Below, one piece after another: positions 5,988 to 51,800 of a stretch of 64,000 bases of DNA. Made by a program: the position numbers and the translations under genes. Positions within the stretch are counted from its first letter, which is position 1, and each line of letters starts with the position of its first letter. The DNA comes from Chara braunii (Eukaryota; Plantae; Charophyceae). The notes beneath the pieces are model-generated. The model searched no databases. It was not told the DNA's origin and saw only the letters and a program-made list of their open reading frames with translations. Where the stretch lies: the NCBI GenBank assembly GCA_003427395.1, contig BFEA01000003.1, positions 8,803,657 to 8,867,656 on the forward strand, given 5' to 3'.

Positions 5988-6117
5988 GTTTTTTTTTAGG
6001 CCAAAGTTAGCGTACTAGAGGGGTTGATAACAGCATCCTCTTCTAGTACACCAAACGAGCGGCCACTCCGTCTATTGGTGGGGAGCATCACCTGCTGGAA
6101 ACCGGGTCCAGCGTCTC
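5988..6117 (-). other. Retroposon 3' cassette (double pseudoknot + hairpin + poly(A))
   Basis: Minus strand: GACGCTGGACCCGGTTTCCAGC-AGGTGATGCTCCCCACCAATAGACGGAGT, then hairpin GTACTAGA..ATGCTGTTATCA..TCTAGTAC and an A-run. Confidence 0.8.
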
Positions 6118-9390: not shown

Positions 9391-11430
9391 ATGGAATGTT
9401 TTTTCAACTTTCATTTCTCGTGGGAATTTTTCTGTTGAGTGATACACCTACTACAATCGAATAAGAAATTCAGAATAAAAAAGACAAAATTAAAAAAAAA
9501 AATAATTAGATCATCATCATGTAGTGAGCATCAAGGATTATGACATGCGGAGTTTAAGAATCAAGAAAGAGAGGGAAAACAGACAATACAAAGTCAACCA
9601 ATCAGAAAACTATTAAAAACAAAACCCTGAGATCATGTTGACACGTAACCTTCTTCACTCGCAGCAAGCTTCACATGAGATAGCTATGTCCTCTTTCCTC
9701 CTTGAAACATTATTCTCCATGAAGATCAAGACATCAGAACAGGTAAGAGGAGAAACACTAACACACCCCTCCCCCCTTCAAACCTCACCTCCTTGCCTTC
9801 ATCGGCCGTCAAGCACCCGACCGCCTATTGGTCGACTACACCATCGAAAGGCCGGACAATGAAGATAATCAGACCGTAGCCAGGATCACCATCACAGCAG
9901 TCCACGCCACTTCACGAGCACCACAGCTGAGCCTGCCAGCTGCCCCTCGCAGGTAGTTTGAAGAGATGAAAGAGGTAAGATCGTTTCCACTGTTAATCCC
10001 TCTTGATACACCATATAACCCCAAACCTTACCAGATATTCCTCCTCTAATCAAGATATTTCTACACTGGTTGCTCCTTCTCCTTCTTCCACACAGCACGC
10101 GACTCCCTCCTGCTGTCAATTCCTCTTGTCAACAGCCCCTCCTCCATCCTTACACTCCACCTCCACCTCCACCTCCTACTCGCCCGGCGAAAACATTCGT
10201 TTTCTCACACTGCATCACTCTCCTACCCGCGACCACCCCTCTTCGTCACCATACCCGTCATACCAACCCCCCACCATAGCCCCATCTTGCTGCTCTCTCG
10301 ACAATCGCTGCCGATCTTCCTTGTACAAACAGTGCCACGCCGCTGCTTTTCACACGAGCGATGTCGAACGCTCCATCGTACCAGCCCCCCACCATCACCC
10401 CTCCGTGCTGCTCTCTCGTCACTTGCTGCCGATCTTCCTAACTCTGCATTGCTGCTGCACCTCGCATGAGCGATGCCGAAGCCTCCTCATGCCAACCCTG
10501 TCGCGTTCTGGCAGCCACACCCATGAACCGAACTCTGGTGCGGGCGGCGTAGAGCACCCGGTTGCGCTGCGCCGCAGAATGACTCCCTTCTTGAGAACCG
10601 ACTGACCAAATCTGCCTTTGTCAAAGGGGAATTCTGCTTGATAGACGTGTTTGGGCCATTGAGAGATAGATTGCGGGGCGAGGTAAATCCTTCTCCTTGG
10701 AGAGAGAAACAATGCCTCTCGCCCCAGTCTCAAGTGGAGAGGTGTAGACAATGGGAACCCAAGAAGAGGGGATGAAAAAAGGAAAAGGAACGAGGGTGGC
10801 GAGATGCATCTTTTTCCGTATTAATTGTAATTTTATGTGATGCTGGACCCGGTTTCCAGCAGGTGCGGCTCCCCACCAACAGAATGGAGCACTCGTGTCT
10901 GTTAAACCATCAGTACCTTTCCCAGCCAACTTGCTGAAACGCGCCGGTTAAGATACAGTTACAATGGCGCCCGCCCAAAATTACAGTTACACACACGATT
11001 AAGGGCGCCCACTAATCAGAGTACCGTTGCGGCCGCATGAAGAAGTGCGTAGACAAAAGGCGCCGCGCGGCAGAAAAAAATCCTAATTACTGAATTCCTA
11101 AATTCCTATCTGATGCGAAAAAGCAAAAAGCACAATTTTCAGAAGGAAAGTCCAAAATTCCGAGAGTCATCGGGGGGGGGCTCAACAAAATCCGAAAAAG
11201 ATTCAAAAGGAAATTCAAAAAGAACGAAGCAATTTCCCGTGCGGTGTCCGCGCCCAAAAGATCGAAACCGCATCAAAAGAAACGACGTCAACATTTATTA
11301 ATCGCGCGCATGGTGGAGCGCCAGACATCCATCCGACCAATCAATCAACCGACCGTCCTAGGACACACCCAGCTCCGAACCCAACACTCCGTCTCTCCCG
11401 CCCTCCCTCTCTTTCTTTTGCTGAAAATTT

Positions 11431-14239: not shown

Positions 14240-15418
14240 ACCCTTTTTGCCTCTCTTGTCCCTCCTACCTCTTGTCTGTTGATCCCAGAGACTGGGCCTG
14301 GGAACACCCTCTGCACCGAAATGAGAAGGTTCAGATACATCGATATTCAACTAAACTGGGATATTTGCTTTCAACTCCTCAGGTCGATGTTAATTGGAAG
14401 GTGGCCTGTAGATGGTTGGCGACTGGTTGGATCAGAGACTCACTGACAAGACTTTTGGAAGCCCTGCCCACATTCTGGGTGCATCTCATGGACTTGGTCG
14501 TTGTTAAACAAGCCAGCTTTCTTTGGCTTATGATGCACTCCCGGTAGCGGCCTGGTGTGCAAAACGAACAACTAAGGCACGGGCGGAATGTCAGATATGC
14601 TCTGGTACTCGAATGGAAGATTTGCAACACTTTGCGTTATACTGCGACATTTCTCAGCCTTTTTGGGACTGGTGGAGACACTCTGACATCCCAGTTCCCG
14701 AAAATGGATCCAGATGGTTAGATAACTTCGTGCTGATGGGAACTGCAGCAAGACGAGCACCTCTCTCTCTACGTTATACATATGCGGAAGAGACACTCAG
14801 AGGTGCAATACTATGGACCCTTTGGACATTGAGGAATTCAGCAACTAGACGTGGAGAGAAACTGACGCCACCAATGGTTCGAGCAGAGGTCAAATATGGC
14901 ATTAAAACAGCAATGCAGGCTGACTGGGAGTATAGAGTACAGCGGAAAGGATTCACTAGAAAGGCAATGCAGCTCTTCACCACAAGGTGGGGCGCCTTTT
15001 CGGGCCTTGCATCGGTGGACTGTCCCCTGGCCCAATCGCCTTCTTTAGTTTTTTCAGGTTTTTTTCTGTGACTTCTCACTTGCATAATTTTAGAGTGGTA
15101 GGATTACTTGGTACTACGGTACTAGGGTATGGCCTATTGTGGAGGGCTACCAATTTACTGATTTGTCACCTTTTGTTGAACTAGATAGGATCTTTTACTT
15201 GGGATTGAGGTTGTTTTTTTCTGTTTTCTGTCGATCCAGATTACCGTGGTCCGGGCTCTGCTCGGCCGGAGAGCCTTGCTCAGCTCGAGAACTGCGGCAC
15301 CTTTTGTGAGGGACGCTGGGCCCGTTTCCCAGCATATAATGATAATTGTTTAAAAAAAAAAAAAAGAAACAAAAAAAAAAGAAAAAAAAAGAAAGAAAAG
15401 AAAAGAAAAGAAAAGAGA
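14240..15418 (+). mobile_element. 5'-truncated L1/Tx1-like LINE (zf-RVT/C-terminus, 3'UTR, A-rich tail)
   Basis: ORF 14523-15071: CQIC...EDLQHFALYC, ILWTLWTLRN. Pseudoknot-A motif at 15310-15333, then a poly(A)/(GAAAA)n tail from 15352. Confidence 0.85.
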
Positions 15419-16527
15419 AGTGGCAGAAACCAGGACAGAACGCCTTTTACTGACAGCCTTGGCGGGCTTAAACGGCCAGTAAACGGGCCCAGCCTTGTGG
15501 GAAAACGCTCGTCACCTACCCTGAAAATTTTGCAGCTCGGGCCTACCCGACCACGATGGCAAGAAAAAAAGTGTGCTGCTGGCGGTTTGGAAAAGCTTGG
15601 TGCGCAATAATAATATTTTTGGGTTCTACTTTTAATAAAAAAAAAAAAAAAAAAAATCTTGGGGCGCAGTGCAGCGCCTCCAAGCCCGCACGAGTGGCTA
15701 GCAGTCAAATCCCCCTAATTTTTTTATGGGTAATCCGTGCTGGTCAGACCAACCCTATACAACCTGTAACATCTCTAATCTTGTACTGTGTGCGACACTG
15801 GACCTGGTTTCCAGCATGTGATGCTCTCCACTCACATATACATTGGCGCTATCTACAACAGTTGAGCCTCCATCTGATTCAAAAGGGAGCCTGCCCTCCC
15901 ACTGATAGGCAGTCACTAAATGATACGATGTTTTCTTTTTGCAGAAAACATGAAAACAAGAATAGGTAGCGGGCGTAGAGGGGGTGTCTGCTCTTACCAG
16001 CACCCCCCCCACGCTCGACCGCGATGCTTTCTTTTTTTTTTTTTTTTTTTTTTTAAAAAAAACAAGAATAGGACGGCACATCGAACAGCCCCAGAAGAAT
16101 AGGACGGCAAATCGAACTGCTCTTACAAATAGTTTCGGGATGCTGGCCCCAGTTCCTGCCACGTGTTGTTCCGACTTGCTCCCCACGAATAAGAATGGAG
16201 CATTCAGGGATTTTTGCTGTGATTAGTCACCCGACTGATGTTGTCCATGCGCCTGTCACAGCGTGCCACTACCGGTAGTAGGCATCACGGCCTCTCGCGC
16301 TGGTCCAGCGGGCGCCATTTCCATAGTTTCTTGAGCGCGCGAGCAGGGATCGCCTGGTGTTGTCGGCGCCATTCATCCGCTGCGGTGGAACGCGGTTCGC
16401 GGAGCAGTTCCGCTGCGAGCTTGCGCGCTCCAGTGTGAGTCTATTGCCAGAGTCCGCGCGAGGGTTGACTTTGACGTTGACTTTGATGATCTTCGGGAGT
16501 GAGGTTTGTCGGCGTGACTCCGGGAGA

Positions 16528-17184: not shown

Positions 17185-18120
17185 ATGAGTGACAAGCAGA
17201 GGACGGGTGAGAAAGCGGGGCGGGAAGGAGGGGGGGGTCCTCCACCCGAGCCCGAGCCTGATCGGGATATCTTTGTCGTTTTGTTGGCGCTCAGAACCGC
17301 TACGAAGATGACCTCAATGATGCTCAATGCTGCAGAGAAGGGCCAGGAGATGGTCGAGGGAGCGTCGAGGTATGTCTCGATTACTGTAGAGAGCATTATG
17401 CCTGATCCCTTCAGCAGATGGTTGACTCGATTTCGGCAGATGACTTATTTTCAATGGTTCCTGCTTGCTGTGATGGGCCTATTTTTGGCGGTAATTACTC
17501 CCCCCGCTTTGATCTTGTTAGGTTTGTTTTCCGCGGTGGCTCTGCCCGTGGCTGCCGTCACTTCCCCCTTTTGGGGCCCCGTGGCCGTGGTGTTTTTGGC
17601 GCTCACTTTCCCTCTCTGGAGTCCTGCTTTGGCGGGATTGGCCATTTTTCAGTGGGCGGGAAGAATGGCGGGCAAGGTGAAGGAGGGGGTGACCAAGCTG
17701 GAGGGACACCTTCCTAAGCCCGCTAGAGGGGTGATCGGCTGGTTCAGAGGCATGAGTCGGGCGAAGCAGGTGTTGGCGCTCTTCGCCCTGGCCGCTGCCA
17801 CCGTCCTCGGCATCGGCGCGCTTCTGGTTGTCGGGACCCCCGTCGTCGTTATTGGCGGGGGGCTGATGCTCTTTTTCTCGCCTGTCATTCTGTTGACGTC
17901 ACCGCTGTGGATTCCGGTTGTGCTCTTCTTCCTCGCCGTTGCCGCAGTGGTGTTGGGCGGCGCCGGCTTCCTCGTCGCCATGGCGGTGAGCGCCTACTGG
18001 CTTTATCGGTATTACCGAGGGCCGATGCCGCTTGGGGGAGAGTCGGTCTTCAAATTGCAACGTAAGATGGGGGGGATGCTGGACCGCACTAGGCAGACGA
18101 TCGCGGGGAAGGCCGTTTAA
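17185..18120 (+). CDS. Oleosin-like lipid-droplet protein with two hydrophobic hairpins and two proline knots (311 aa)
   Basis: Two exact PX5SPX3P knots (PVAAVTSPFWGP and PVILLTSPLWIP), each within a long uninterrupted hydrophobic tract. C-terminal YWLYRYYRGPMPLGG resembles the oleosin WxYRY..G.HP.G motif. ATG start, no stops. Confidence 0.88.
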   Translation: MSDKQRTGEKAGREGGGGPPPEPEPDRDIFVVLLALRTATKMTSMMLNAAEKGQEMVEGASRYVSITVESIMPDPFSRWLTRFRQMTYFQWFLLAVMGLFLAVITPPALILLGLFSAVALPVAAVTSPFWGPVAVVFLALTFPLWSPALAGLAIFQWAGRMAGKVKEGVTKLEGHLPKPARGVIGWFRGMSRAKQVLALFALAAATVLGIGALLVVGTPVVVIGGGLMLFFSPVILLTSPLWIPVVLFFLAVAAVVLGGAGFLVAMAVSAYWLYRYYRGPMPLGGESVFKLQRKMGGMLDRTRQTIAGKAV

Positions 18121-19544: not shown

Positions 19545-19690
19545 GTTTTTTTTTTCTTCTTTTCTTTTTCTTCTTCTTTTAACACCCCGGCCGGTGTTAA
19601 TGCTGCTTATAAGAGCAGACACCACTAACACCTAGGGAGAGGCTCCATCTAATGGTGGGGAGCATCACCTGCTGGAAAACGGGTCCTCTC
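19545..19690 (-). other. Retroposon 3' cassette (pseudoknots + hairpin + A-rich tail)
   Basis: Minus strand: GGACCCGTTTTCCAGCAGGTGATGCTCCCCACCATTAGATGGAGCC, then GGTGTTAGTG..GCTCTTATAA..CATTAACACC and an A-rich tail. Near-identical to 46308-46455. Confidence 0.8.
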
Positions 19691-19754
19691 CTTGATGAGG
19701 AGATTAAGAAATGTGCGATCGTGGAAGTCGTGCCTATAATATGAAAGTTGATGA

Positions 19755-22501: not shown

Positions 22502-23120
22502 CTGCAATTTTTTCATCATCAAAGAGGCCCACAACAGGACGCAAGGACCACCAGCAAGAACCGGCAGAACGAAAGTCTTAGGGCGTTTCATTTCGAGTAA
22601 GGAGGGCCTGCATGAAAGCCAGAATCACACATACTCTCATTGACAAGCAATTTGAAGCAAACCAAAAAAGTCCCCAGTCTTCTAAAGCGGATCCAGCAAA
22701 GCGATTGCAAATGGCATGAACAACTCTACAGTCAGGAGGGCTACCCTTTTCTTTCTTTCTTTTTTCTTTTGTTTTTTGGGTAACCGTTACGATGCTCCAA
22801 TCGTTTTTGTGGGGAGCAGCAGCACGTGCTGATGGTGCTGGGAACGGGGCCCAGCGTCCCGTAGGAATTTATACGGAACAGTGGGTCATAGGTTCAATTC
22901 CTAGTGAGTTGATCTTGGACTTCTTGTGTATAACAAGCACTGCCAGTGGGAGTCTGTGAGATACCCGGGCTGTTACCTGGTTTGGCTGAGGAAAACGAAA
23001 AATCCTGGAAGAACTACTGAGGTATTCAAGAACTGGGGCTAACAAGGATACTCTTGAGTCATGAGAAATCAACATATTAAACGGACGACGGAAGAACTAC
23101 TGAGCTAGGCTGCCACCTGC

Positions 23121-27674: not shown

Positions 27675-28582
27675 ATGGATGACGTCTCTCCGTTGTCATC
27701 TCAATCCTCGCACCCCAGAGACGTAAAAATCAGCCCCCGAGGAAAGGTCCGAGAAGCTTCCGCCTTTTCGTGGATGTCGTCCCCTGGTGGAACAGCGTGT
27801 GACGGCGCGGACGATGTGGAGGAGAAGCTCGGCGATAATGCACGCACCCGGTGCACGCACGTACACTAACCGGGAGGTGGGCGAAAGGGATGCCGCCGCT
27901 AAGGCTGATTCAGCCCTGCAACGTCTACGCGCTGCAAGCCGAACGTCGTCGTCGTCACCACAACTGTACTTCAAATTTTGAATTTCAAATGTAGAGGTCC
28001 CCCTTTTTTCTTTAGTTTCTGTGGCCTACCTCATGCCCTTTTCCGCCGGACGTCGCTGGACCACGCCATCTCCACATGGACACCGGACGCTGGACCATGG
28101 ACACCCTCACCCGCGGCCGCTTAGCTTCATATGAAAATGGCCGCGAGCAGGCCACAACGAAACGTCCTCGGGGGACGTTCCCAAGAAGATGTGGAACAAC
28201 GCCGCTAAATTCCCTTACGAGCCACAAGGAAAATTCCTTATGGCTCAAGGAACTAGTGAGGAGTGTCTAACGACGCCCCATTTCCCACTTGCACCGTTTA
28301 GTTGAGGCAACTCAACGGTGTGACAACTGAAAACGTTCATTTTCATTCGATTTCAAATGAGAAATGCATTTATAAATGACACGGATACAATTGTTCTGTT
28401 TTTTCTTTTTTCACAATTGGAGTAGCATACGGGCACCTCTATAGCAGAAAATGAAGATTTAAACTAATGACCTATCTACGCATATTATGTTTTTTTTTTT
28501 TTTTTTTTTTTTTTTTGAACTTCGTATATGGATAACCTACTTATCGAGGTGATAAGAGCATCCCCGGTAAGTAGGCCACAGC

Positions 28583-28616: not shown

Positions 28617-28799
28617 NNNNNNNNNNNNNNNNNNNNNNNNNNNNNNNNNNNNNNNNNNNNNNAACTTCGTATATGGATAACCTACTTATCGAGGTGATAA
28701 GAGCATCCCCGGTAAGTAGGCCACAGCGTCGAAGGCTTCATCTATTGGTGGGGAGCTACACCTGTTGGAAATCAGGTCCAACGTCCTTATACAAATGAT

Positions 28800-29490
28800 G
28801 AAAATATATCTGCTCGAAATCAGGTCCGGCGTCCTTGTGCCATGGTGTGAATGTATGTGCTGGAAAACGAGTCCGACGTCCCCATCGATTTGATCTATAG
28901 AACCTAACAAACAAAATGAAACATCAATCATATCAGGCAAAACCCTAATCATGATGTAATGTGTATTACAACAATGTGATTTGCATCTGCTGGAAATCGG
29001 GTCCAGCATTCCTATACCATATTGTATAACCATATCCAACAGTGAGAAACAAGCGACCTTTGTGCAATGATAAGATAGCAAAGAAGCAATACACTCCTTC
29101 TTGTACATATACTTAACCTATATCTTGAAAAAGAACAGAGGAATGAAAGTATATTTGTTGGACATCAGGTCTAGCATCCTTGTGCCATGGTGTGAATGTA
29201 TGTGCTGGAAAACAAGTCCGGCGTCCCTATCGATTGGATCTATAAAACCTCGCAAACAAAATGAAACATCAATCCTATCAGGCTAAACCCTAATCATGAT
29301 GTAATGTGTATTACAACAATGTGATTTGCATCTGCTGGAAATCGGGTCCAGCATCTCTATACCATGTTGTATAACCATATCCAACAGTGAGAAACAAGCG
29401 ACCTTTGTGCAATGATAAGATAGCACAGAAGCAATACACTCCTTCTTGTACATATACTTACTTAACCTATATCTTGAAAAAGAACAGAGG
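28800..29490. repeat. ~350-bp tandem duplication containing reiterated pseudoknot-A motifs
   Basis: CCTTGTGCCATGGTGTGAATGTATGTGCTGGAAAAC...CTTGAAAAAGAACAGAGG occurs at about 28833-29141 and 29178-29490. Confidence 0.9.
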
Positions 29491-30493
29491 CATTGATTAC
29501 TCCCCTACAAAAGGGGAGGATTGACCTCCTGTTGATGAGGTATTGTTTATATTCGAGCATTATTAGTTTCTGACTTCCTATATGCAGGCAAAATTATCAT
29601 TGTCCACCCTTCCGCCAATAACAGACCGAGCTGGTGATGCCCTGACCTATCTCCCCCCTAATTGAATTGCAGAAAGCAACTCCAATCAGGAATCTCAACA
29701 AGGGGGAGCATCAAACCAACTCCCACCCTATACTACCCAAAAAAGAGGACATGAACTCATAGTACACCATCAATTTGTATTTGTTGAGCAGAGGTATTGA
29801 TTACTTCCCCACGCCAGGGAAGAACCGCCTCCAGAACATGAAGCATGAACACGAGGAAAAATAATGAGAGAAATCTTCATCGTCGATCACCTCACCCAAA
29901 GAACCAAATCAGAACTCGTACCCCAAATCCCCAGCAGGCAATCACAAAACCTGAGGGGCAACCCACCCCCTACCTCCATTGAGGTTGCGGGCCGGGCAAC
30001 CCCACTCAACCAAGGGGACGGGCAGACTCAAATATCCTATCCCAACCCGATGCCAGCCAAGGAAGAGCAAGTGATCCCTATCCACCTCAGGCAATCCTCT
30101 CCCCTCTCCCCACATACAACTGATAATAGTGGATGCACGCACCTTGCTGTTGAGCATGCCTCTGACTCGATCCCTGCTATCATTGCTGAATCCGACGTTG
30201 AGACTATCGTTATAGTTATCGTTGTTGTATCGTCCTCCCCTCTCTTTCCCGCTGTTCCCATGGTTGTCGTTGCCGCCATCGTCGCGATTATTGTTGATCA
30301 TGTTGTTGTTGTTGTTGTTGTCGTTGTTGTTGTTGTTTTTGTTGTTGTTTTTGGCGTTGTCGTCGTTGTTGTTTTCACCATCATTGTTGTTGTTACTGTC
30401 ATCCTTCACGCCCCCTTCGCCCATTTCGCCCAATCCCAATCCCTGCGCACCATCGTTTTTGTTGTTGTTGTTGTTGTAGTCGATATTGTTGTT

Positions 30494-30532
<39 letters not shown>

Positions 30533-31384
30533 GACATCTCCATTATCTTCCGCGTCCACCTGCAGTATCACTCCCATCATGCTGCAGCCGTGGACGTCAC
30601 CCCCCCCATCATTGTTATTATTGACATCGTCTCTGTCGTTGATGTCGCTGTAACTGATGTTGTTGCTGTTATTTGTATTTTCACCGCAATCATCTTCACC
30701 GTCGCTGTAACTAATGTTGTTATTGTTATTTGTATTTTCGCCGCAATCATCTCACCTGCCAGCAATCCATACCGATACTCCAACTGATTGCGTAGATCTC
30801 GCCCCAATGTAAAGAGGGTTCTACAAACAGCCAACCTGTCATCCGCCCGCCTCCAGTCGATGTAGATATCGAGTCGGGGATTCGTCCCCTCCTCCAGCTC
30901 CCACAGGATGTCTAACAACTCCTGAATCCTATCTTCCAACCACTGGTCCATCGAGATCGCTCCCCCATCGATCTCCCCCCCTTCATGCTGCCGCTGCATA
31001 AGCAACCCCACTATCGTCTGCATCTGCTTGCATCCCTCCTCCAGTGTGATAATCCATTCTTATGCTTGTTGTTGTAGCTTCCCTACCAAATTCATCTCTC
31101 CCCCTATTAGTTGCGCCACTCACACAGTTCTACTGATCCCTTGTAATCCCACGGTTGGCGCTACCCCTGCTGACGTGTCATGGGACGTCAGTGTCACCAA
31201 ACAACAGGTGCCACATGGCCACAAGCCACTTCACGCCTATCGGGCACATGCGCAGGCCCAACAGTCGGGGAGCTGTTCTTCCCAGGCGCTAGTCGAGTCG
31301 GGGTGACCGGGCCCTACCGGTCTGCCGGCTTCGGGGCGCTAGCGCTTGCGCAACTTCTTCCCTCCGGAACCCATATTATGTTAT

Positions 31385-34300
31385 TCTAACCACTAGCATC
31401 TACTAAATCAAAAGACTATCGACCAAAACACTAAGTTTATCAACCCTATTTTTATTCTCTACATTGGGATTACTAATCAGCCCCTAAAACGGGGGAGGGG
31501 CACTCTAAAGTGAGGCCATTGCTCATGTTGTCACTCCCTCCTCGTCCTCCCTCTACCTGCCTCCTGCAGCCGATCCATCAACCGAGTGAGCAGGTTGTTC
31601 ATGACCCTACTCTATGGATTGAACAACCAGGCAACCAAACAAAGCTGACCCCTCTCATCAATTGACGCAAACGAATTATTCAAACACCAAGTTTCTCTGA
31701 ACCACAGTTTGTCAGCACCTCCGAGTCTGTTACTTGATTTGACAACTTCCCTCTGCCAATCTGCTTGAATCACCCTTCTCAAGTTTTGCATCGTAGTACC
31801 TCTGATTTGTGAGTTAGACCATTGTTTCCCTTCAAAGACTTGATCATTCCTCCCCTGCCAAATCACCAAGAAGATAACAGCTCTGGCCGACTGTGTTGTG
31901 TAGCCCCAGCCTTTGGACAACAAGGCATCGTTCGGAATCCCCCCTAGTAAAGTCCAAAACTTATCTCATATCAGGGATTGGCCAGGTAGGCCAGTCAAGA
32001 GCTTAATCCACCATTTTCAAATTCGAGCAGAGGCAGGACAATCCCACCACAGATGGATAGTAGACTCGAATGCCCATTCGCATCCGAGGCATTTCAGGTC
32101 GATCTCCAACTGCCTAATTGCTAGCCAAACCGCAGAAGTGGTAGCCGTCATTGATAGCGCCATAAGATTGAAGCTTGTCTTTGGCGGGAAATTAACTTTA
32201 GTTGTTCCCAACAGTTGAGCAAGACCTTATCAATTTTGTTAGGATTAAGTTTCATAACAGCCATCCATCTTGATTTTGCAATAGTCAAAGGGTTTTTTGG
32301 AGCAACAATGGCCTTATATCCGATGCTCGGAGAGTAGTCCAGCAGACTTAAGATTTCTCCCGATTTTCCCAGTGCTCGTCATTCCCACATAAGAGAGTCA
32401 AGTTTCATATTGATTACAGTTGAGCCTTTCAGTACTACATTACATTCTCTGAATCGTTGAAAAGTAATTGTTTCTCTCACCCGGATTTGAGAAAGGGTGA
32501 AGCCCATTGACGGGTGTTTATCATCATCCAGTTGCAACAGGCGAGTATTCCGATGGATCTGCCAACCTTGAAAAAAACTATTCCCATCTGGCAAGTATTC
32601 AATCAATTTACATAATTTTGACTGATCCCCATTCGTGCATACGAACCAAGTGACTGGCGGGTCAACGACCTTCAGACCAAGTTGTTGTTTCCAATGTTCA
32701 GGGATCGCACTAATCAACAGTGTTAGTTTCGAGCTAAAGTTTCTTACTTGTCCAATAATTGTTCTCAGTTCCGACTTTGATTTCCACTTACCCAGTAGTT
32801 GATCACATATGTCTTTACTTATGAAAATCCCCAGTTCAATCCATTCGCACCCAAAGCTAGATCTATCTGCTTTGATCCAATCCCCTACCGGTGCACGGAT
32901 GTGGGGTGTTTCAAAGAGTGGTTGGGACAATATTTTTGCTTTGGTTGTTGGTTCAACCCAGACATCTGGTTTTAGCTTCCTCCAAGTCAGGATGACCGCT
33001 CTCTAGAACGGGGATTTAATTCGCCTCCTTTGAAATGAGTATAACATTAGGTAAGTCCATAGATCCTCTGGTCTTGCCAACTTTCACTCCCTTGGCAAAA
33101 TACTTTCGACCATTATGACCCAATGTGGGGCCGAAGTTTCTAAGCGCGCTTTAATCAACCATCGTGCTAGGATTGCACTGTTTTGTTTCTTGGGGTCCAG
33201 AATCCCCAGACCCCCTTGGGATCTGGGTGTACAGATAATCTTTCAGGCTACTTTAGTGATAAAGTCATCCTTGTCTGCAGCAAATGGTTTCCAGATAAAT
33301 TTGGTTGCACGTTTTTTTGTGAGTGATATAGTTGTTTCCCCAAATCCTTAACTGTCCCTACAAACCGTAATAAAACAAACAGAGCTCCGTTTATAACTAG
33401 TGTTCGGCCAAGCAACGAAAGATGGGGGGCCTTACCCCATGTAGTCATGCATTACATGAATTTTTGCAGAAGTAAGTCATCCTGGTTTCCTGAACAATCC
33501 AAGTGGGAGATCTGAACTCCTAAGAAATGTTAAGACAGATCGTCCGATATGCGCTTCATTCCCCACTCACATGTCAATGAAAAACCTGCAGGGGAAGATA
33601 CATTGATTTATGCCAATTAACTGAAGCCTTAGAGAGTTCACAATAACTGGCTAATTCAATCTTCAAAGCACCCAATGATTCCTCCGTATTTTCAGAGATT
33701 GCAAAGAGGTCGTCCGCCAGTGCTTTTACCGTGCACTGAACCGGACCTACCCTAAGTCCTCTAATGAGTTCATGCTTTCTTATATTATTCAAGAGCATCT
33801 TCATTTGGACTGCAAAAGGAAGTGGGGCAAGGGGGCAACCTTGCCTAAATGACCTTGTCAAGGGAAAGTTTTTCGATTCTTGACCATTAATCATTACTGC
33901 AGCAGTTGACAGGGTATACATGGCAACTATCCATCTGGGAAAATTAGCACCAAACCCCATTACTTTTAACGTTGTTAAGACATATGACCAATTCACTCGG
34001 TCATATGTTTTTTTCAGGTCCAGGAGTAATACCGTCATATTTAGGGAGTTGTTTTGTATGATGCCCAGGGATTCAATCGCAGTCACTATATTGTCAAAGA
34101 TCGACCTACCTTGTACAAACGCAGCCTGGTCGTTCTGTACCAGAGCGGAAAGATACTTCCCCAATCTTTTAGCCAAAATTTTGGCAAGTAATTTATAAGA
34201 TATATTTAGTATTAATATCGATCTCAATTGCATATTTATGTACGATCACCCTTCTTAAACAACACCGATATAATGTCCTTGCGCATATTTGCTGACAAAT

Positions 34301-38430: not shown

Positions 38431-38755
38431 TCCTTCACTTTCGAAGCACTGACGGTGCATCTCTCCATGTTCCCGCCAAAGATTCATTGCCATTTTGAAA
38501 ACGGTGTGACAGCTACATCTAATCTCACAACTGAAACAACACAGTCACCTTCTATCATCAGACAGTCAACTACACGGGCATTTCGGACAGCTGCACAGAC
38601 ACCTACAGTGTTCAGGTGTATCTTAGACTGTCAACAACATTGCCAATTCGGGCAGCTGTACAGCTTTGCTAGATGAAGTCTCTAAGTGTGCCGGTACACT
38701 CAACTGTATATCCATTCACACAAACAACTACAATGCTCAGGGACGCTGGACCCGT

Positions 38756-38939
38756 GTTTTTTTTTTTTTTTTTTAATTCAAAACAAAAAAGGGCGACGGC
38801 CTTGAGATATTATCATCGAGCTGACCGGCCCCAAGCAATTCATTTGTAGTCGGTTTTACTCGTCAAGATCCATCATGTGGATTCGAACACAGGTTTGTAT
38901 TTCAACAGTTCATGGGTGTACCCACTGAGCTAGGCTCTT
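38756..38939 (-). mobile_element. Complete tRNA-derived SINE with poly(A) and a 16-bp TSD
   Basis: Minus strand: A box TAGCTCAGTGG, B box GTTCGAATCC, poly(A) at 38757-38774. Flanked by GGGACGCTGGACCCGT (38740-38755) and GGGTCGCTGGACCCGT (38940-38955). Confidence 0.85.
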
Positions 38940-38993
38940 GGGTCGCTGGACCCGTTTTCCAGCAGGTGCTCACACAAACAACTACAATGTTCG

Positions 38994-39084
38994 GGGACGC
39001 TGGACCCGTTTTCCAGCAGGTGCTGCTCCCCACCAATAGATGGAGCCTTCTCGTCAGTGGGGAAAAAAAAAAAAAAAAAAAAAA
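38994..39084 (+). other. Reference copy of the double-pseudoknot 3' cassette followed by poly(A)
   Basis: GGG-AC-GCTGGA-CCC-GTTT-TCCAGC-A-GGTG-CT-GCTCC-C-CACC-AATAGAT-GGAGC, then a ~22-nt A-run. Confidence 0.85.
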
Positions 39085-39149
39085 ACGGCGTGATTCGGGT
39101 TCCTTTTACACCCGGCAAAAGTAAGCAATAGGTGGGCTGGCGCGGCATG

Positions 39150-39152
<3 letters not shown>

Positions 39153-39205
<53 letters not shown>

Positions 39206-39245
39206 AACACACACACACTCACTCACTCACTCACTCACTCACTCA
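39153..39245. repeat. Compound microsatellite (CT)n(CA)n(CACT)n
   Basis: Directly visible in the sequence. Confidence 0.95.
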
Positions 39246-40967: not shown

Positions 40968-42333
40968 CTGCATGGCAACATTTGATGTCAGTGTCGAGTT
41001 AGCGGTCATGCTTGTTAACCCTTTTTACTTTGGTTTTCAGAAATGGCCACAGTCTTCTGATACCAACAGGTGACCGGGCACAGGTAATTCAGAGTCTTTT
41101 CTATTTTTATAGACAAACATCCATGCAGGACTAACCAATATCCACAGTGATTATAAGAGCAGCCCCCTAGAGTGAGATCCCCCTGTGTAGATGGCTCCAG
41201 TCCTGGCGGGGGGCTACACATGCTGAAAAATGGGTCCAGTGTCCCTGATAACATGTATCTAATACTGCGCATTTGAAGAGCGGCCTTGATTGCCCTCCCT
41301 TGAGGGGATTAACTGCTTCCTTACAATTGTAGCAATGCTCCAAAAACTTCACCCCCAAAACATTCCAATCCCCTTGCTACTTTTCCCCAGATTTGGCAGG
41401 CAGGCAGGCACTTGCTCTTTAGCTGGCAGAACATAAACTCAGGGATTGCAGTTGGTGAATAAGGCAGATCACTGAAAGAACAGACAGAGGACCTGGTTAC
41501 CTGGGTTGAGGAGGGGAGATGTGAGAGTTTTCGGGAGTGAAGGGGCTTAGGCCTGGATCCTGACCCTCTGGGAAGGGTTATGGGGAACAGCAGATTTCCT
41601 CCCAACTGGGCCAGGAGACAGCCAAGTTGAACACCCAGAGTGACAACATCTCTTCCTTTACCAGAGGCGTGAGCGCTAAGAGTGGCTAAACCGGCAAGGC
41701 CCTGTGCCCCACGCCCAACGACTTTGGCAGTCCCAAGTCCAACCAATATGGTTCACGTCACCCTGTACTTCAGTGACTGAAGATGAGTGGGCATCGACCC
41801 TGTACATAGATATGACGAGTGTGTAAGCATGGTCTTAGATCAAGGGAAGCAATAGGCAGAGCAGAAGCAGGCGGCGGGTTTGAGTGAGGAAAAGGATGGG
41901 AGAGTGAGTGGCCAACAACAGGGAGATCACGGGAATGAACAAGGAGTGAGGGGGAGTGAGAGGTGGGTCAACGAGAGAAGGGGAAGCGATCTACAACTGA
42001 TGAGGGGATAGGCGCGAATCAAGGCAATTAATTGAAGGTGGGTGAGCAGGAGGCGAGTCAACATGTCGGCATCAAGGGAAGTGGAGAGAAGAAGACCCAC
42101 AGGTGAGGAGGATGAAAGGGGAGGGATGTTTAGGGGGAAAACAAGAGAGGGAGCGGCTGGTAACGGGCTTTAGCATCTAGAGAGGAGCGGAGACACGTCA
42201 TTTTTTTTTTTTTTTACTTTGGTGCAGGATCCCACTTCAGGAGGTGATAAGAGAAACCACCTTAAGTGGGACCTGCGACAGGCCTATCATATACAAGATA
42301 GCACAACTCTTACATACCACAGGCACACATACT

Positions 42334-42829: not shown

Positions 42830-43676
42830 GTGGACTGCGCTAGCGCTAGCGCTATCGCCCTGACGCCGGCGGACCGGTAGGGCCCAGTTGCCCCGGCTAG
42901 ACTAGTGCCCGATGAGGGGAGCTCCTCGGCTGCTAGGCCTGTGCATGTGCCCGACATGCGCACATGGCTCCTTGGTTGTCAAGTGGCACCTGTTGTCTGG
43001 TGACGTGGAGGTCCCCTGATGCGTGGGCAGGGGTGGTGCCAACTGTGAGATTGATAAGCGTTTCTGAAGAATCGTAATAGTGGTGCAGTTCTTTGGGCGA
43101 GAGATGGATGGTGGGGGAGCTACAATGTGGAGTGGAGGACTGGCTGATTACCCTGGAGGAGGGATAACGTGGTGGCTGCAGGCGATTGTGGGGCTGTTGT
43201 CTTCGCGGTGGCAGGAGGGGCCAGAGGTCGAAGGGGGGGCAATCTCATTGGCTGAGTGGTTAGATGACATGGCCGAGGACATGTTGGATATCATCTGGGA
43301 GCTGGAGGAGGGGCTGGATCCCCAGCTCGAAGCCTGCATCGACTGGAGGGGGGCGTATGACATGATGAGAGCCTGCAAAGCCCTCTTCACTAAGGGTCAC
43401 GATCTGCATAACCTGTTGGAGGATTGACAGGAGTTGGGCAAGATGGGCGAGAGGGTTGCAGATTGGAAGCTGATCATGACGGCAGGCGAGAACGAAATGG
43501 AAGGGGCGCAGGCAGCGAAGATGATAACAGCCGCATCGTCAACAACAACTACAACAACAACATCAGCAACGTCAGCAGTGGCGAAGACAACCACGGTAAC
43601 AAAACAACGACAACAATAACAAAAACGACAGCGACGACAACCACAGCGGCGATGGCAGTGGTGACGACAACAGCGA

Positions 43677-43763
<87 letters not shown>

Positions 43764-44563
43764 CGACAACAATAGCGGCAACGGCAGCAACAGCAACAAC
43801 AACAGTGGCAATGACGATGGCTACAGCAACGAGATCAGCAATGATAATGGCAGTAGCAACATCCATACCAGGACAGTGGGCGAGAATTAGGGGTCTGATG
43901 AGGATGATGAGGTGGGGCTTGGGGTTGAATAAGCGTTTTACTATCTTCCCCGCCTTCTGTCCGGTGTTTCTCCCTCTTGATCAGCTCCTCTTCGTCTGGC
44001 ACCGGGTGGGAGTAGGATAGACAATGTCCCCTTCATTGATTGGATTTGTCCGGCCCTCAATTCCCAATCATGATGGGGTTTTGATTGCCCCCCAGGTGGA
44101 AGGTAGGTTGTTTAGGATTTTGTGTGTTGGTTCGACTTGCTTGTTGATGAAAATGTTTTTCGTTAGGTTTAGGCCACAAGGGCAGGAGGTCAATCCTTCC
44201 CTAGCGCTGGGAAGTAATCAATGCCTCTGCTCATTAGGGAGATATGGCAGACACGGTGGAAAGGGACTGTGGCTCCATACGACATATACAGATCTTACGA
44301 ACACATTCACACTGTATTGGATGCTCAGTATGACATCTCCAACACATCATTGTATAGCGATGCTGGACCCGATTTCCAGCTGACACACATCACATTATTG
44401 TATAGGGACGCTGGACCTGGTTTCCAGCAGGTGCAGTTCCCCACCAATAGATGAGCCTTCAACGCTGGGGCCCACTTAATGAGGCCGCTATTATCACCTC
44501 GTTAAGTGGGTTTTCCCACATACGAAGCTCTCTTTACAAAAAAAAAAAAAAAAAAAAAAAAAA
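42830..44563 (+). mobile_element. Poly(A)-tailed non-autonomous retroposon, family W copy 2
   Basis: Same 5' block, IVGLL..WELEEG..IDWR ORF (43080-43427), (GCA)n(ACA)n tract, WHRVGVG*, pseudoknots at 44405-44456, hairpin at 44471-44510, poly(A) at 44538-44563. Confidence 0.8.
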
Positions 44564-44956
44564 GAACCCTGGCGGGGTGATAGTCCTGAGTGATTAACAC
44601 TGAGGTAGGATAATGGCAATAGGGAAGCGCTGGGAGAATTGACGAGAGGATGGGTAGGGAGGTCATCTCACAAATAAAAGATTGTCAGGACAACCAATGG
44701 CTGACTGATGACTGCTACCACTGTATGTCTGGAACCTGGCATCTACAACAACGTGGCCTTTTAATTACCCAAAAAAAAATAAGTGGGACCTTCGAGGAAG
44801 GCTCCATTCCATCTATTGGTGTGGGGCATTACCTGCTGGAAATCCGGTCCAGCGCCCAGTACATTGCAGTATTCAGATCAAGCACAGAGTTATTGAAACC
44901 GAACGGGTGCCCCCTCCTCCCCTCCCTACAGGAAACATCACCCCCATCCACTCCTT

Positions 44957-45249: not shown

Positions 45250-46455
45250 ACCTTTTCGCCCGATTTTTCATGAAGTAATTCCTCAAAACCAAACCATTGG
45301 ACAGCATGTTAAAAACTTCAGCCACCCCCTTCAAACCTAATGCCATCAGAACTACCTTTCACTACTGACCTCATTCTAAACAGCCTCGACCTTCATAGGG
45401 AATATGTACAGACTGGGAAGGAGAGTAGTGATTTGGGCTCTTTGGTGGCAGAGGTGCACCCTGGCCATGGAGAGGGTGCGGGTGGAAGGGGTGGAAGTTC
45501 TAGAACAGATACAGCAGCAGATTCACCTTGAGCTTACGCAGAGATGGTTGGACACAAGATCTCAATTAGACCCTTTCAAACAAATTGGAGATGTCAGGAC
45601 ACGGATAACGACTTTTGCACAGACCGGGTGGGTGGAGAAAGAGAAGGATGGATCGCAAAAATTGAATGGAGTGGGGACAAGGGAGTTGGGCCGTATGATT
45701 TGGAGCAAATAAGAGACTATCATCTAATTTTTAAGGACTGGACTAACATAGAGCCCTTCTTCCCTCGACGCCCTCCCTCGGATTTTCCGGAACCCTTTCC
45801 TCCTCATGCCCTGTCTCTAACAGAGATTCTGTCTTCAGCGTAATACTTTCCTTTGCAAACCTCACAGGCTTTCACAAAGCGGAACACCTCCCTGGAGCCC
45901 CCGGGGGAGGACCCCACCAATGGCTTTTTCTATTCTATTTTCTGTTGAGGTAGTCAATGCTGACCTAGAGTATTCTGGAAGCAACTGAGCATGAGGGTTC
46001 TGAATGCAACTGAGCATGGTTTTGGAGTGAGTTGCTCCCCTGATTAGTATCAGTCCCTAGCTGTCTATCTGACACCCTTCTTATAAGGGTGAAGAGATAC
46101 AAAAGGGATTGGCTGCCCTGCATGCTCACACAAGGCTACTTTGCTGGATATTACACAGGACCTGCTCAGTCAATCCCCTGGGTTTCAGGGCAATCAATGC
46201 TGGCAGACTCCATAGCCACTATTTTCATAGGGTCTGCTCAGTCAATCCCCTTTTTTTTGCAGGGTAATCAAGACTGGCAGATCTCACTCAAGATATTTTT
46301 CATTCAAGGGACACTGGACCCGTTTTCCAGCAGGTTACGCTCCCCACTAATAGATGGAGCCTCTCCCCAGGTGTTAGTGGTGTCTGCTCTTACCAGCAGC
46401 ACTAACACTGGTGGGGGGGTGTTTAAAAAAAAAGAAGAAAAAAAGAAGAAAAAAG
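45250..46455 (+). mobile_element. 3' remnant of an L1-like LINE with a full 3' cassette
   Basis: VVIWALWWQRC...QQIHLELT and FPEPFPPHALSLTEILSSA*, then pseudoknots at 46308-46350, hairpin with GCTCTTACCA loop and an A-rich tail. Confidence 0.7.
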
Positions 46456-47193
46456 TAGAGGACCAGGTGATAACGTCCCCACTCCTGTCGCCCATCGCAC
46501 GTCACTTTTGAGCACAGCACAGCAAATCACGCTAGCGGTCCGCGTTATAAGGGAAGCAGGGAGGACTATTGGAAGGCAGAGTGAACCCTAGTCGGCCTAT
46601 ATTCGACAGGCGGGGCATAATTCTGCAGTGCACTGTTTCTTCGGGAGAGGTTCGCCCAATTCGTGAATGCACTCACTGCCACCGGAAGGAAATTCGAAAT
46701 CACTTTTGAACCACCGTCGTGCTTCCCGTCTCGTCCCTCCTATGTAACAGGAGCATGTGCCTCTCTGGACAGGACGACAACCCTAGGACACACGAGACCA
46801 ACTTTTTTTTTTTTTTTTTTTTTAAAGGTAGTTTGTTATACAAGCCAGGAAACGGGCCCGACATCCCTCACATATGTGCAGGCGGCTCACAATTATGAAC
46901 GAGGCATCACCGGCCAAGCCCACATCGGGAGTCGCAAAACCCAAAATAACAAAAGAAAGAAAACAACTGGGAAGTCTGCAAAGCAAACCATCGCCTCTCT
47001 TTCTAACACAGATTGTACTCAGACTGTATGTCTCCTTCATATCCAAAACACGCTACCAAAAAATGTGAGGCAATCGGGACCCAAAAGGTGGCCAACTCCC
47101 GTCCCATTACATTTGTAATTCCGTACCGAAAAACAAAAAGAAAAACAAACAGAAGAACAATGAAGACCGAAGCAGAAGGGCTTTCTTTTCTTT

Positions 47194-47197
<4 letters not shown>

Positions 47198-47277
<80 letters not shown>
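47198..47277. repeat. (CT)n microsatellite
   Basis: About 40 CT units. Confidence 0.98.
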
Positions 47278-47281
<4 letters not shown>

Positions 47282-47399: not shown

Positions 47400-48700
47400 T
47401 GTTTGGAAAAGGACTCAGATCTATTCGTGGGGAGCGGCACGTGCTGGGAACTGGGCCCAGCATCCCTCATGAAGTCATACAGAACAATTACAGAATAGTT
47501 TGGGGATACATGGGCCATTACCTGGCTTCGGCTAAGAATGTGATTTGAGAAAACAGTAAGCTAGTGCTCCTCTATGCTGGAAAAGGGGTCCAGCGTCCCA
47601 GACCTCACTCCCCAAACCAGGGCCCGTGCCCGAGAGGCTTGCTTTCCTGTCCGTGAGGGGAGAGGAGCCTGGCTGTTGGCCCAGGGGCACCCGACTACAG
47701 GCCACAGGCTATCCCTCCCCCCCCCCACTCTCTTCCCTAGCCCCTATTGACCCTGCAGAATTTCCACCAAACACAATGGGTGAGGAGGGAACGGGTCTGC
47801 GAATTCTGATGCCGGCCTCAGCGCTATGCTGGGGTCAATCGTTGTCCAGCGGACAGCTGATAATCCCGTGCCATCCCCGCCTGTGGGACGTCTGCGTCCC
47901 CCCCTTGCCCCTGCGCATCCCCTGACCAGGTTGCCTCTGCCATCCATCCCCCCCGTGTCCCTCCCAGCCACCCCTCTCCAAGGTGGGAGATGATCCTGTT
48001 GACGTCCTTTCTTGACGAAGCTCATCCTTTCCTTGGCCATCTGCCATTGGTAAGTAAGCTCCGCCTGTATCAATTGCTTCACCTGCTCTGCAACCTCCCC
48101 CTCTGCGACCCTCGCACCCTCAAACACCCGGATGCACCTCTGCCACCAGATTACCCATATGATCGTCCTTATGCCCAACCAGAACATCTTCTCTTGGAAG
48201 CAATTGTATGGCTGTGGGCCCAGTGACCCATCAGAATCGCCACCAGTCCCATGGAAAATAAGATCCTGGGACTGCTTGCTGCCCGATCCTGTCCGACCAG
48301 CACCATAACAGTACAGACAAAGGTCATTGCATGAACATGTGTTCAATTGTTTCTGACTTTTTCTGTGGGGGGAAACTTTGAAGACACCTGCTGCACCAGG
48401 GCAGTGCGCACCCCTGCTGTTCCAGGTTCATGTGGTCTATCAGCCACTCATTGGTCGGCAGGCAGCGGTGCGCGATCTGCCACTGCAAGGAGGAGATTTT
48501 TGCTGGCCTTAGCTTGTATTCCCCGAACGATTGGGTGGGTTTCAGCAGACGTGCGTCAACGTTGAGGTGTGGGTTTCAGCAGACATGCATCAACGTTAAG
48601 GTGCGCTGCCACCTGCCTTCCACCACATCCCTCAAGGCCCTCTTACATCTGCCTCAGGGGTCTACAGGCTCTAGTCCTTTCATGTGATTATTGCGTCCGT
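47400..48700 (-). mobile_element. 3' remnant of the same LINE family, convergent with 45250-46455
   Basis: ORF 47744-48346: IIWVIWWQRC...KQLIQAELT...FADPFPPHPLCLVEILQGQ*. Pseudoknot motifs at 47575-47599 and 47412-47466. Confidence 0.7.
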
Positions 48701-48898: not shown

Positions 48899-51800
48899 TG
48901 CAATGAACCCAGATCGCGAAGACACTTGTCAACGATGCCAGCCCATATAGATAGCAACCTGCTGATGAAATGTCAATAATCATAATCGTGTCCAGATAGA
49001 ATGAGATGGGGAAACATACACAGACGAAAGAGAGAGAGGGGAGAATAGACTTAGAGGGGAGAAGTAAACAACGCCCACTCCTGCTTCGTGCTCCCTCCTC
49101 AATCGCCACCTCAATAATCAATAGTCCGAACACAAATCTGAAGTTTTATCTCAATGTGCCACGTGGCACGTCAACTGTCATCATCGGTGAGCCGGAGCAA
49201 TGTCGACATCGAAAGACCAGGTACGTATCTACAATCGCCTCACAGTCTTGATCTCCTTCCAAGTGACGATGAATCAGAACAGCAATATCAGACACGTAGC
49301 CTGCCACGTCAGCAAGAGTACATGTGGCAGCAGCCACGTCAGCGGCGGCGCGTGGCAGCTGCCACGTCAGCATGCCCAGAAAACAATTGTCAGCCAGCCA
49401 CCATGTCGAGCCAGCAGCGCGTCGCCATAGTCGCTCAAGTGCCAGCGTAGAGCCAGCGTCCCAACCAGTATCGCAGCGTCACACTAGCGTCGAAGTCAAC
49501 GCGTGAAGTCAGCAATGACGCAAGACAGAATGTTCTCTCAGCCAGGTAGTCCAGGCTTATGTAGCGATGATGCGGGGTCTGGACCCTGGTTGCTGCTTCC
49601 CTAGGCCGTCGAGATCTCAAGACAAATGGCGGCCCAAATTTGCCTGAAACCGAACTCCCTGTGGTCTTGATGTTGTCCGGGTACCTGCGCACAACAAGTG
49701 AATGTATCCGACCAAGGCCTGGGCGTGGTACCTTTGATAGTTGACTTAGACTTTTGACTTTCCGAAACAGTGCGTGGTCACACTGCCCGACTCAGGCCGA
49801 GTTTGGCCTGAGTCGTCTACGCTCCGTTTCGAGGGCCCAGACTGCTGCAGAACACGGGTTACTATATTCCTGCCGACCCATTTTCGAGTTCCATTGCAGA
49901 AATAACTAAGATTTTAACCCACGTTCATATGCAGATACAATATCAGGAGTCGTTTCAAGTAATTCTCATTTACTAAACCATTTGTCCTCAGATGGTGCCT
50001 GAGATTTGAAACGTACCTTGAACTGCTTCTGGGGTCGTCCACGTCCTCCTGTAGAGAAGTACCCATGTTCTATGATTCTGTCTACCTCATATCCGCCGTC
50101 CATGTCTGGCGGAATCATAGAAGGTCTGTGTGGAAACTCATTTCCTTCTACATAGGGTAACAATTTGGACGCGTGAAAGACGGGATAGGTTTTGAGGTGA
50201 GGGGGAATATCAATTCGATAAGACGGTCCCTCTGCATCCCCAATTACTTTGAGAACTTCCCAGGGTCCAAAATAGACGGGCGGAAGTTTCTGAGACACAT
50301 TTTCTTCCAATGAAAACTCTTTGGACTTAACCCAGACAAGATCACCTTCCTTGAATGTTGAGGGTCGGCGATGCTTGTTAGCTTGTTCAATCATTTGGTC
50401 CTGAGCTTTCTTCAGATTGTCCTTTACTTTCGTAACATCTTCTTGAAACAATAGTGCATACTCCCGAGTCCCTGGAGGTAACCTAAGAAATTGGTCTCGT
50501 GTTAACACATCAATGGGACGCTTAGGTTTCTACCCCTTGTGCAGTGCATTAGGCGTGCGCCCTGTAGCGGTATGAACACTGCTGTTGTATGCACTTGCTA
50601 TCTTGGGTAAGTTCTCGTCTCAATCAATCTGATCGGGTCTTACATACATATGCAAAAGCTGCTGACACAAACGGTTCATCTGTTCACTTTGTCCATTCGT
50701 TTCAGGGTGTCGCCCTGACGACATGGTCAATCGTGTACCGTATGCTTCCATGAGCTTTTTCCATGGCATGCTTGTAAACCTGGCATCACGATCAGATACA
50801 ATAGAGAGAGGAAACTCATACTCAATCACCCATCGCATCTGAAACTTTTGTATGACAAGTTTTGTTCGCTCTTCTGCGGGGTAAGGGAATGAACATGGCA
50901 TATTTAGAGAAACGATCCACAATAACCATTACTTGACTATTGTCGTTTCAACTTTTGGTGAGGCTCATAAAATCCATCGAGATAGACTCACCTGGTTCGC
51001 TAGGAATCGGTAATGGTTTCAAAAGACCAAGTGGATTCTCGTGTGAGGGTTTATTTCTCTGACATACCAGACATGTACGAACATAAGTTAGTACGTCCTC
51101 CTTCAATCCCTTCCATTCAAAGCGTTCTCTAACCACACCGGTGTCATAACATTCCCCAATCAGCAAAATTTTAATTTCTTCCTGATGAGGAATGCACAAT
51201 ATTTGTTCAGTTTGGTCTAACAAGAAAATCAAACCATCGGTCACTCTATAGTTAGGAAATAGAGATGGATCTTTCACAAGGACATCCATGATAGGTTTCC
51301 AAATAGGATCAGTAGTATATCCTTGACGAATTTTATCTTTCATATCACTCCCAACGTCCAAGTAAGAGACAATAGTACCAAAGAAATCACAACGTCTGGA
51401 CAATGCATATGCAACCACATTAGACTGACCTTTGATAAGTTTCAATTCAAAATCAAAAGTATCAATGAATGTAGACCATCGTACTAACTTATCAAAGAGC
51501 CTAGGCTGTGTCTTTATCCACTTCAGAGTAGAGTGGTATGAGTACATAGTGGCGTGTCTCCCTAACAAGTAATGCTTCCGTGTGTTCAGCGCACAGACCA
51601 AAGCAGACTTATGATATAATTCGATTGGTTTCATTTCAGATTGTGCATCCTTAAGTTGCACAACCTTACCTTTGAAATCGATGTCCAGGTTGGCTTCCTC
51701 GTGCCATTCCATACCCAGAATGAGATCGAAAGGCAAATTATTTTCAACTGGGAAGGATAACTCATGCATAATATTTTTTCCTTCCCTAGTTCTAAACCGA

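Follow-up and report, generated by a model that had tools for sequence, protein, structure and literature searches.

A conserved two-hairpin RNA module at the 3' ends of poly(A) retroposons in Chara braunii, a probable tail for reverse-transcriptase recognition

The 3' tails of plant and algal L1 elements are common to LINEs and SINEs (PMC3472496, PMC3747384), as in maize LINE1-1_ZM with ZmSINE2/3 and in Chlamydomonas L1-1_CR with SINEX-3_CR (Ohshima 2012, PMC3472496; reviewed in PMC3747384). The plant L1 stem-loop, which is common to ZmSINE2/3, combines a variable stem with a conserved UCU loop (PMC3472496, PMC3747384). In Ohshima's proposal, the L1 ancestor of green plants required a particular structured 3' tail for recognition, a requirement that was later relaxed (PMC3472496). 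In avian R2Tg, a small pseudoknotted element of the 3' UTR is bound by the R2 protein (PMC12222951, PMC11601368). SINE superfamilies are defined by a conserved domain, as in the CORE-, V-, Deu- and Meta-SINEs (PMC4824008).

Here we analysed a 64-kb stretch of Chara braunii DNA (hereafter the window), in which a 53-nt module recurs at retroposon 3' ends. Like the plant L1 tails, the Chara sequence is a 3' tail of ~50-80 nt that is conserved far beyond the rest of the element, is carried by a LINE and by non-autonomous partners, ends in poly(A) and includes a stem-loop with compensatory changes. The terminal hairpin of Chara resembles the plant L1 stem-loop in its variable stems and its conserved UCU loop. 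However, unlike the maize and Chlamydomonas tails, with which it was compared by their published descriptions, the Chara tail adds a 53-nt two-hairpin module upstream of the stem-loop; this module occurs solo, doubled or combined with other tail parts, and it is carried, in very many copies, by numerous unrelated bodies. The likeness to R2 lies in the recognition of a 3' UTR structure by the element's reverse transcriptase to start target-primed reverse transcription, as it would apply in Chara. However, R2 is site-specific, belongs to another clade and uses a restriction-like endonuclease, its pseudoknot is known from a cryo-EM structure, the Chara knots being proposed from sequence, and the two share no sequence or Rfam similarity. 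Like the domains of the SINE superfamilies, to which the plant 3' angio-domain can be added, the Chara module is one short conserved block over otherwise unrelated families; those domains, however, are mostly central and of no shown structure, whereas the Chara block is 3'-terminal, is borne by LINEs too and contains hairpins backed by covariation.

The initial annotation had also likened the module to tobamovirus RNA. The tobamovirus upstream pseudoknot domain and viral tRNA-like ends do have consecutive short pseudoknots near the 3' end, but this is a geometric likeness only, between an RNA virus and a retroposon in an alga, and the analogy found no support in an Rfam search with two tails, which returned only noise at E values up to 10. 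Rfam covariance models run over the whole window gave no match at the gathering score. Two scans of viral contigs yielded chance matches or nothing, and the module was present in none of the viral contigs scanned; the exact pattern matches L016:9346-9365, L017:4586-4605 and L018:1097-1116 lacked the rest of the module and were rejected as chance. An Rfam family, a viral element, a coding feature and a tRNA were each considered as the identity of the module and rejected. In the literature searched, with longer motif strings and for Chara LINE/SINE tails, no description was found.

The focal module and its copies

The window is Chara braunii nuclear DNA, as an intronless oleosin ORF (17185-18117) maps exactly to contig BFEA01000003.1 of assembly GCA_003427395.1 and the transposon proteins encoded in the window find their best hits in this species. 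It is retroelement-rich, with Ty3-type polyproteins, LINE reverse transcriptase, poly(A) runs and microsatellites. On direct inspection, the motif at 38994-39046 reads letter for letter as originally annotated. It consists of two parts, modules A and B, and lies in the following surroundings:

38994..39017 (+): module A, focal copy; stem 38999-39004 with 39012-39017, 7-nt loop
38994-38996 with 39005-39007 (+): proposed pseudoknot helix of module A, GGG complementary to loop CCC
39018..39046 (+): module B, focal copy; 4-bp stem 39019-39022 with 39031-39034
39025-39029 with 39042-39046 (+): proposed second helix of module B, a loop segment and its complement
39047..39085 (+): 3' end of the focal retroposon; 16-nt spacer, then poly(A) of ~23 A from 39063
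38940..38970 (+): upstream tandem module A in the same element as the focal copy
38757..38939 (-): unrelated SINE of tRNA origin; A-box-like and B-box-like motifs, A18 tail (direct reading)

The SINE sits inside a module A copy, so that a half copy is left at 38740, and is flanked by a target-site duplication of 16 nt (38740-38755 versus 38940-38955, one mismatch), which makes the first 16 nt of 38940..38970 a repeat of 38740-38755. The SINE itself is without the module and has a different tail; it is a high-copy element, with high read depth over 38786-38938. Around the focal element, no target-site duplication of at least 8 nt was found.

Between them, blastn, nhmmer and a covariance model recovered all 18 positions listed in the initial annotation, and about seven further sites were found, most of them inside a 345-bp tandem repeat at 28798-29490. 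Altogether, the window holds ~25 module copies, and 10 more were collected from other Chara DNA (loci L002, L003, L008, L009 and L011; contigs L012, L013 and L015). The first half of the module gave 14 matches with up to three mismatches and the second half four, as against none in 100 shuffles. The LINE remnant and the copies of the window are:

14523..15350 (+): LINE remnant; ORF2 C-terminus with zf-RVT at 14523-15071
15310-15335 (+): type-2 module A in the LINE remnant; A-run from ~15350
6065..6117 (-): full copy; terminal hairpin 5999-6064, then A-run
10837..10890 (+): full copy
15792..15849 (+): decayed copy; divergent long loop ahead of the last strand
16137..16201 (+): type-2 copy (CGTG/CACG); 10-nt insertion in the module B linker
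19642..19692 (-): 5'-truncated copy; terminal hairpin 19572-19641 next
22794..22860 (-): type-2 copy closing a short SINE-like element; A-rich tail next
28735..28787 (-): full copy with AGG/CCT and GTTGGA/TCCAAC; terminal hairpin 28663-28734, poly(A) ~28490-28516
28804..29357 (-): six-unit module A array in the 345-bp tandem repeat; internal, partly decayed copies
41194..41245 (-): decayed full copy; hairpin region 41110-41193 next
44357..44457 (+): module A unit 44357-44383 and full module 44405-44457; hairpin 44457-44535, poly(A) from ~44538
44801..44858 (-): full copy; 1-nt deletion and duplication in the long loop
46308..46360 (+): full copy; terminal hairpin 46361-46424, then A-run
46838..46867 (-): module A alone (GTCGGG/CCTGGC); A21 run next
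47413..47466 (-): type-2 full copy (GCTGGG/CCCAGC, CGTG/CACG); (AAAC)n tail
47574..47599 (-): internal module A unit of the element that holds 47466, from which it lies 133 nt upstream

The extra minus-strand copies lie at 28804-28835, 28858-28882, 28973-29012, 29154-29183, 29203-29227 and 29318-29357. The region 28798-29490 comprises two repeats of the 345-bp unit (92% matches) and consists mostly of module A units and CA-rich spacers. Tandem arrays also exist elsewhere in the genome, as seen from contigs that jump back from 39040 to 38994. A metagenome scan returned three true Chara-like contigs plus L014; the latter was rejected as a chance hit, being an exact pattern match (L014:9051-9074) without the rest of the module.

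The sequence variants quoted in the initial annotation were present: GCTGGG/CCCAGC at 15310, 22860 and 47466, GTTGGA/TCCAAC together with AGG/CCT at 28787, GTCGGG/CCTGGC at 46867, and CGTG/CACG at 16137 and 47466. TGG/CCG was likewise found at 44858, but as a pairing it needs a register shift of one base and is a T.G wobble.

One DNA run of Chara braunii contributed 24,116 contigs that matched a 501-nt stretch, and the summed depth, which is not a copy number, reached millions over the module versus 55-340 in the left flank. Copy density is ~1 per 2.6 kb in the window versus 1 per 29 kb in ten Chara loci that were reached via Ty3 proteins and are centred on them, a small sample of only ~7 copies in ~235 kb. 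Extrapolated to the Chara assembly, which we take to be ~1.8 Gb, these densities suggest 10^4 to 10^5 or more copies. DNA reads of two other organisms gave no match to the focal stretch, which is no proof of absence.

Other features of the window comprise two Ty3-type LTR retrotransposon interiors with protease, RNase H and integrase (48936-51440 and 55222-57754), which lie ~6.3 kb apart and are 90-96% identical, and an intronless ORF of 311 aa with an oleosin domain at 17185-18120 (+), an annotated protein in GCA_003427395.1. Long microsatellites of the types (CT)n, (CA)n, (CACT)n and (TC)40 and CAA/CAG-rich and GTT-rich tracts occur as well, with sites at 39150-39245, 47198-47278, 43497-43846 and 30251-30705; these sequences probably explain the small word shares with runs of other organisms.

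Hairpins and proposed pseudoknots

The initial annotation had claimed covariation in all four stems. This holds for hairpin A and for the 4-bp stem of module B, but neither for the GGG/CCC helix nor for the 5-bp helix. The sample comprised about 35 copies, many of them decayed, and the 35 copies of module A could be aligned without gaps. In hairpin A, formed by module positions 6-11 with 19-24, 92.9% of the alignment cells are paired and five of the six pairs are changed on both sides, a result matched by only 2 of 500 shuffles. The apical A-U pair is exchanged for G-C in six copies, with no half-changed copies, and a compensated copy exists for each of pairs 1, 2 and 3. The 4-bp stem of module B reads GGTG/CACC in type-1 and CGTG/CACG in type-2 copies (16137, 47466), and the CACA of type-2 copies 22860 and L012 is a CpG-decay product. 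Types 1 and 2 are distinguished by three fixed differences (positions 11, 19 and 26), all within proposed pairs, the partner of position 26 in type-2 being G or, after CpG decay, A; the chance that four random changes give two kept pairs is about 1e-4. Since the full type-2 copies are members of a single SINE-like family and have their head in common, these changes represent two events in a single lineage. The two stems with covariation, hairpin A and the 4-bp helix of module B, were also returned independently by RNAalifold. Comparison of the copies thus shows a pair of adjacent hairpins in the sense RNA strand, the first with a 6-bp stem and a 7-nt loop, the second with a 4-bp stem and an 8-nt loop, each of which retains its pairing by compensatory mutation. 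The stability of the 53-nt module is unremarkable (z = -0.4).

Each hairpin loop is complementary to its flank and could close into an H-type pseudoknot. In the full model of the initial annotation, both modules form such pseudoknots and the tandem pair is the functional signal, a model that we regard as tentative. It is in keeping with the loop-to-flank complementarity of the consensus in both modules (chance by shuffling 9.5% and 3.8%) and with loops of 2 nt across 5-6 bp and of 4-7 nt across 3-4 bp, lengths that the geometry of H-type pseudoknots permits. Rough stacking-plus-penalty energies favour the knot over the hairpin in module A (-9.2 versus -7.8 kcal/mol) and in module B (-8.2 versus -5.3 kcal/mol). 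Free variation with several alleles occurs solely at module positions 16, 30 and 31, which are the predicted linkers, and the other loop positions are conserved; genome-wide, the reads indicate the same free sites among the best-supported ones listed (39009, 39023 and 39024), the linker 39023-39024 of module B varying freely. Moreover, the last strand of module B is retained despite indels in the long loop and even loop replacement, and a pseudoknotted tail bound by an R2 protein provides a precedent (PMC12222951).

However, the GGG/CCC helix has only its outer pair doubly changed, a count reached by 329 of 500 shuffles. The three units that supply its A-U cells all belong to a single tandem array, and CCT arises repeatedly through CpG-to-TpG change (9 of 35 copies), so that no independent compensatory event is left and the single coincidence matches chance expectation; the 3-bp helix is broken in about a quarter of the copies. 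All changes seen in the 5-bp helix of module B are one-sided; the cells that seemed to be changed on both sides were an artefact of model-based alignment, which had misplaced 16137, 22860 and L002 or involved rows without module B, and MAFFT, too, misplaced the last strand of this module. In addition, conserved loops fit protein contacts equally well, and nested folding offers competing partners to the 5' GGG. The helices that would close the pseudoknots are complementary, conserved and invariant in the amplified lineages. On balance, the chances for module B being a pseudoknot are about even and those for module A, a marginal case, are lower; a tandem double pseudoknot is plausible as a structural model but less likely than not.

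The initial annotation had further read G.U wobbles as a mark of the folded strand. This argument does not hold: G.U and A.C cells number 10 and 10, 5 and 5, and 2 and 3 in three helices, a balance that neutral transitions accumulating in dead copies would produce, and the 9 G.U versus 4 A.C cells of GGG/CCC reflect mostly CpG decay. The strand of the module is assigned from the poly(A) orientation and an RNA read bias. In oligo-dT-selected poly(A)+ RNA, read pairs with the first mate on the minus strand prevail by ~4:1, which, by the convention of most stranded libraries, suggests sense RNA. Two variants stand out in these RNA reads, 38999 G>T (18% versus 0.2% of DNA depth) and 39034 C>T (14% versus 1.2% in DNA), and there is a loose end after 39034 with 0.99 agreement; probably, a few individual copies dominate the RNA signal.

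A tail common to LINEs and passengers

All-against-all comparison of 1.5-kb stretches limited the homology between copies to ~53-60 nt, with unrelated upstream sequences. Public reads agree, as thousands of contigs as well as RNA reads carry diverse sequence immediately 5' of 38993-38995. An A-run follows within 300 nt downstream in 21 of 36 copies versus 13.6% of random sites, and three or four further copies are interrupted by assembly gaps or contig ends. The earlier proposal is thereby supported in so far as the module is conserved, structured and strand-specific and marks where poly(A) retroposons end.

Three arrangements occur 3' of the module, namely near-direct poly(A), a long hairpin followed by poly(A), and further units. 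Module A alone lies beside poly(A) at 15310, 46867, L003:1426 and L011:27416. Eleven terminal segments each fold as a long hairpin; their stems are unrelated, and the apical loop is conserved with UCU. Such hairpins lie at:

28663-28734 (-), 44457-44535 (+), 19572-19641 (-) and 46361-46424 (+): window, immediately before poly(A)
5999-6064 (-) and 15955-16030 (+): window, immediately before poly(A)
L008:18885-18960 (-), L013:325-403 (+), L013:426-491 (-) and L015:7-71 (-): other Chara DNA

Two LINEs carry the tail downstream of ORF2. In the window, the ORF with the zf-RVT domain (14523-15071) is followed by a type-2 module A and poly(A) at 15310-15350. On contig L015, a LINE C-terminus (zf-RVT, 29.1 bits versus a cut-off of 27.5) ends near 839 (-) and is followed by module A at 345, a full module at 124, the terminal hairpin and poly(A). 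Both are remnants in which no intact reverse transcriptase was seen; of an APE endonuclease, a reverse transcriptase and the C-terminal zf-RVT domain, only the last is present, and the ORF2 C-terminus 14523-15071 retrieved no homologue when used as a query. A full-length LINE with intact reverse transcriptase and a module tail was not recovered from the window or from the sampled Chara loci and contigs. The same tail closes unrelated short non-coding bodies, with the 3' repeat next to it, and it is conserved beyond the rest of the element, with compensatory stem changes.

LINEs without the module also occur (window 31657-34233 and L002:12311). A second tail type, present at L002:13190-13290 (+) and L002:1200-1275 (-), consists of a hairpin with a 6-bp stem (GAGGTC/GACCTC) and a CCC loop, set in a common block of ~30 nt. 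It closes the LINE L002:12311-13290 and also the passenger L002:1299, where it comes right after a module A copy. Since this passenger joins module A to the tail of another LINE family, the tails are mosaics. The type-2 modules at window 22860-22990 (-), window 47466-47540 (-) and L012:560-625 (+) come from this one short SINE-like family, whose members have a head of ~40 nt in common. On L012, a second, inverted copy of this family head lies just past the poly(A).

Our preferred reading, which we consider likely, is that the module is a shared cis-acting 3' tail of poly(A) non-LTR retroposons in Chara braunii, recognised by reverse transcriptase ('stringent-type'). The tail stands in the 3' UTR of L1-like LINEs with a zf-RVT ORF2 and at the end of many unrelated short non-coding elements. 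The fold would be recognised by the LINE reverse transcriptase, either by itself or in combination with the terminal hairpin and its conserved loop. Binding of the enzyme would bring the poly(A) end into position to start target-primed reverse transcription; passengers would be copied through carrying the same tail. Judged from sequence, recruitment of reverse transcriptase is the most likely role of the module, which would most likely be an additional member of a kind already known, the stringent-type LINE/SINE tail.

What counts against this reading is the variable distance between module and poly(A) (~20 to 270 nt) and the presence of internal and tandem units, both loose for a primer-positioning signal. 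The unremarkable stability of the module, the failure to recover a full-length LINE with this tail and the sample of ~35 copies, with type-2 evidence from one family, likewise weigh against it. The looseness in position favours an action of the module at another step, i.e. RNA stability, 3'-end formation, export or translation, the true reverse-transcriptase signal then being the terminal hairpin or the poly(A). The terminal hairpin does resemble the plant L1 stem-loop with its variable stems and UCU loop (PMC3472496), and in L002:1299, where module A is paired with the tail of another LINE family, the module may serve such another step. However, families lacking the hairpin were amplified too (38994, type-2 and the LINE tail at 15310), the match of tail types between LINEs and passengers fits recognition by reverse transcriptase, and a signal of another function was not found. 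We regard action at another step as unlikely. Less probable still, and already disfavoured, is recent common descent of one structurally unconstrained tail via template switching: many copies are near-identical and one-sided changes look neutral, with G.U as frequent as A.C and CpG decay dominant, but the module is kept while its flanks are unrelated, compensatory double changes lie far above the expectation for independent decay, and variation is concentrated at three linker positions.

Chara is a streptophyte alga, i.e. an algal relative of the land plants. Read as a tail for reverse-transcriptase recognition, the abundant, structure-constrained module of Chara, carried by LINE remnants and by passengers, fits Ohshima's proposal (PMC3472496). 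With ~53 nt, the RNA offers a compact test case for template choice by an L1-type reverse transcriptase. If the pseudoknots are real, the module would parallel the avian R2-bound element and could provide a small recruitment tag. It is possible, though we hold it to be the lesser chance, that two consecutive pseudoknots, invariant in the active lineages, form the signal of a charophyte L1-like reverse transcriptase that was hijacked by a very large population of non-autonomous elements. If true, the L1 clade would gain its first pseudoknotted tail, and there would be direct evidence for stringent RNA recognition by the ancestral L1 of the green lineage.
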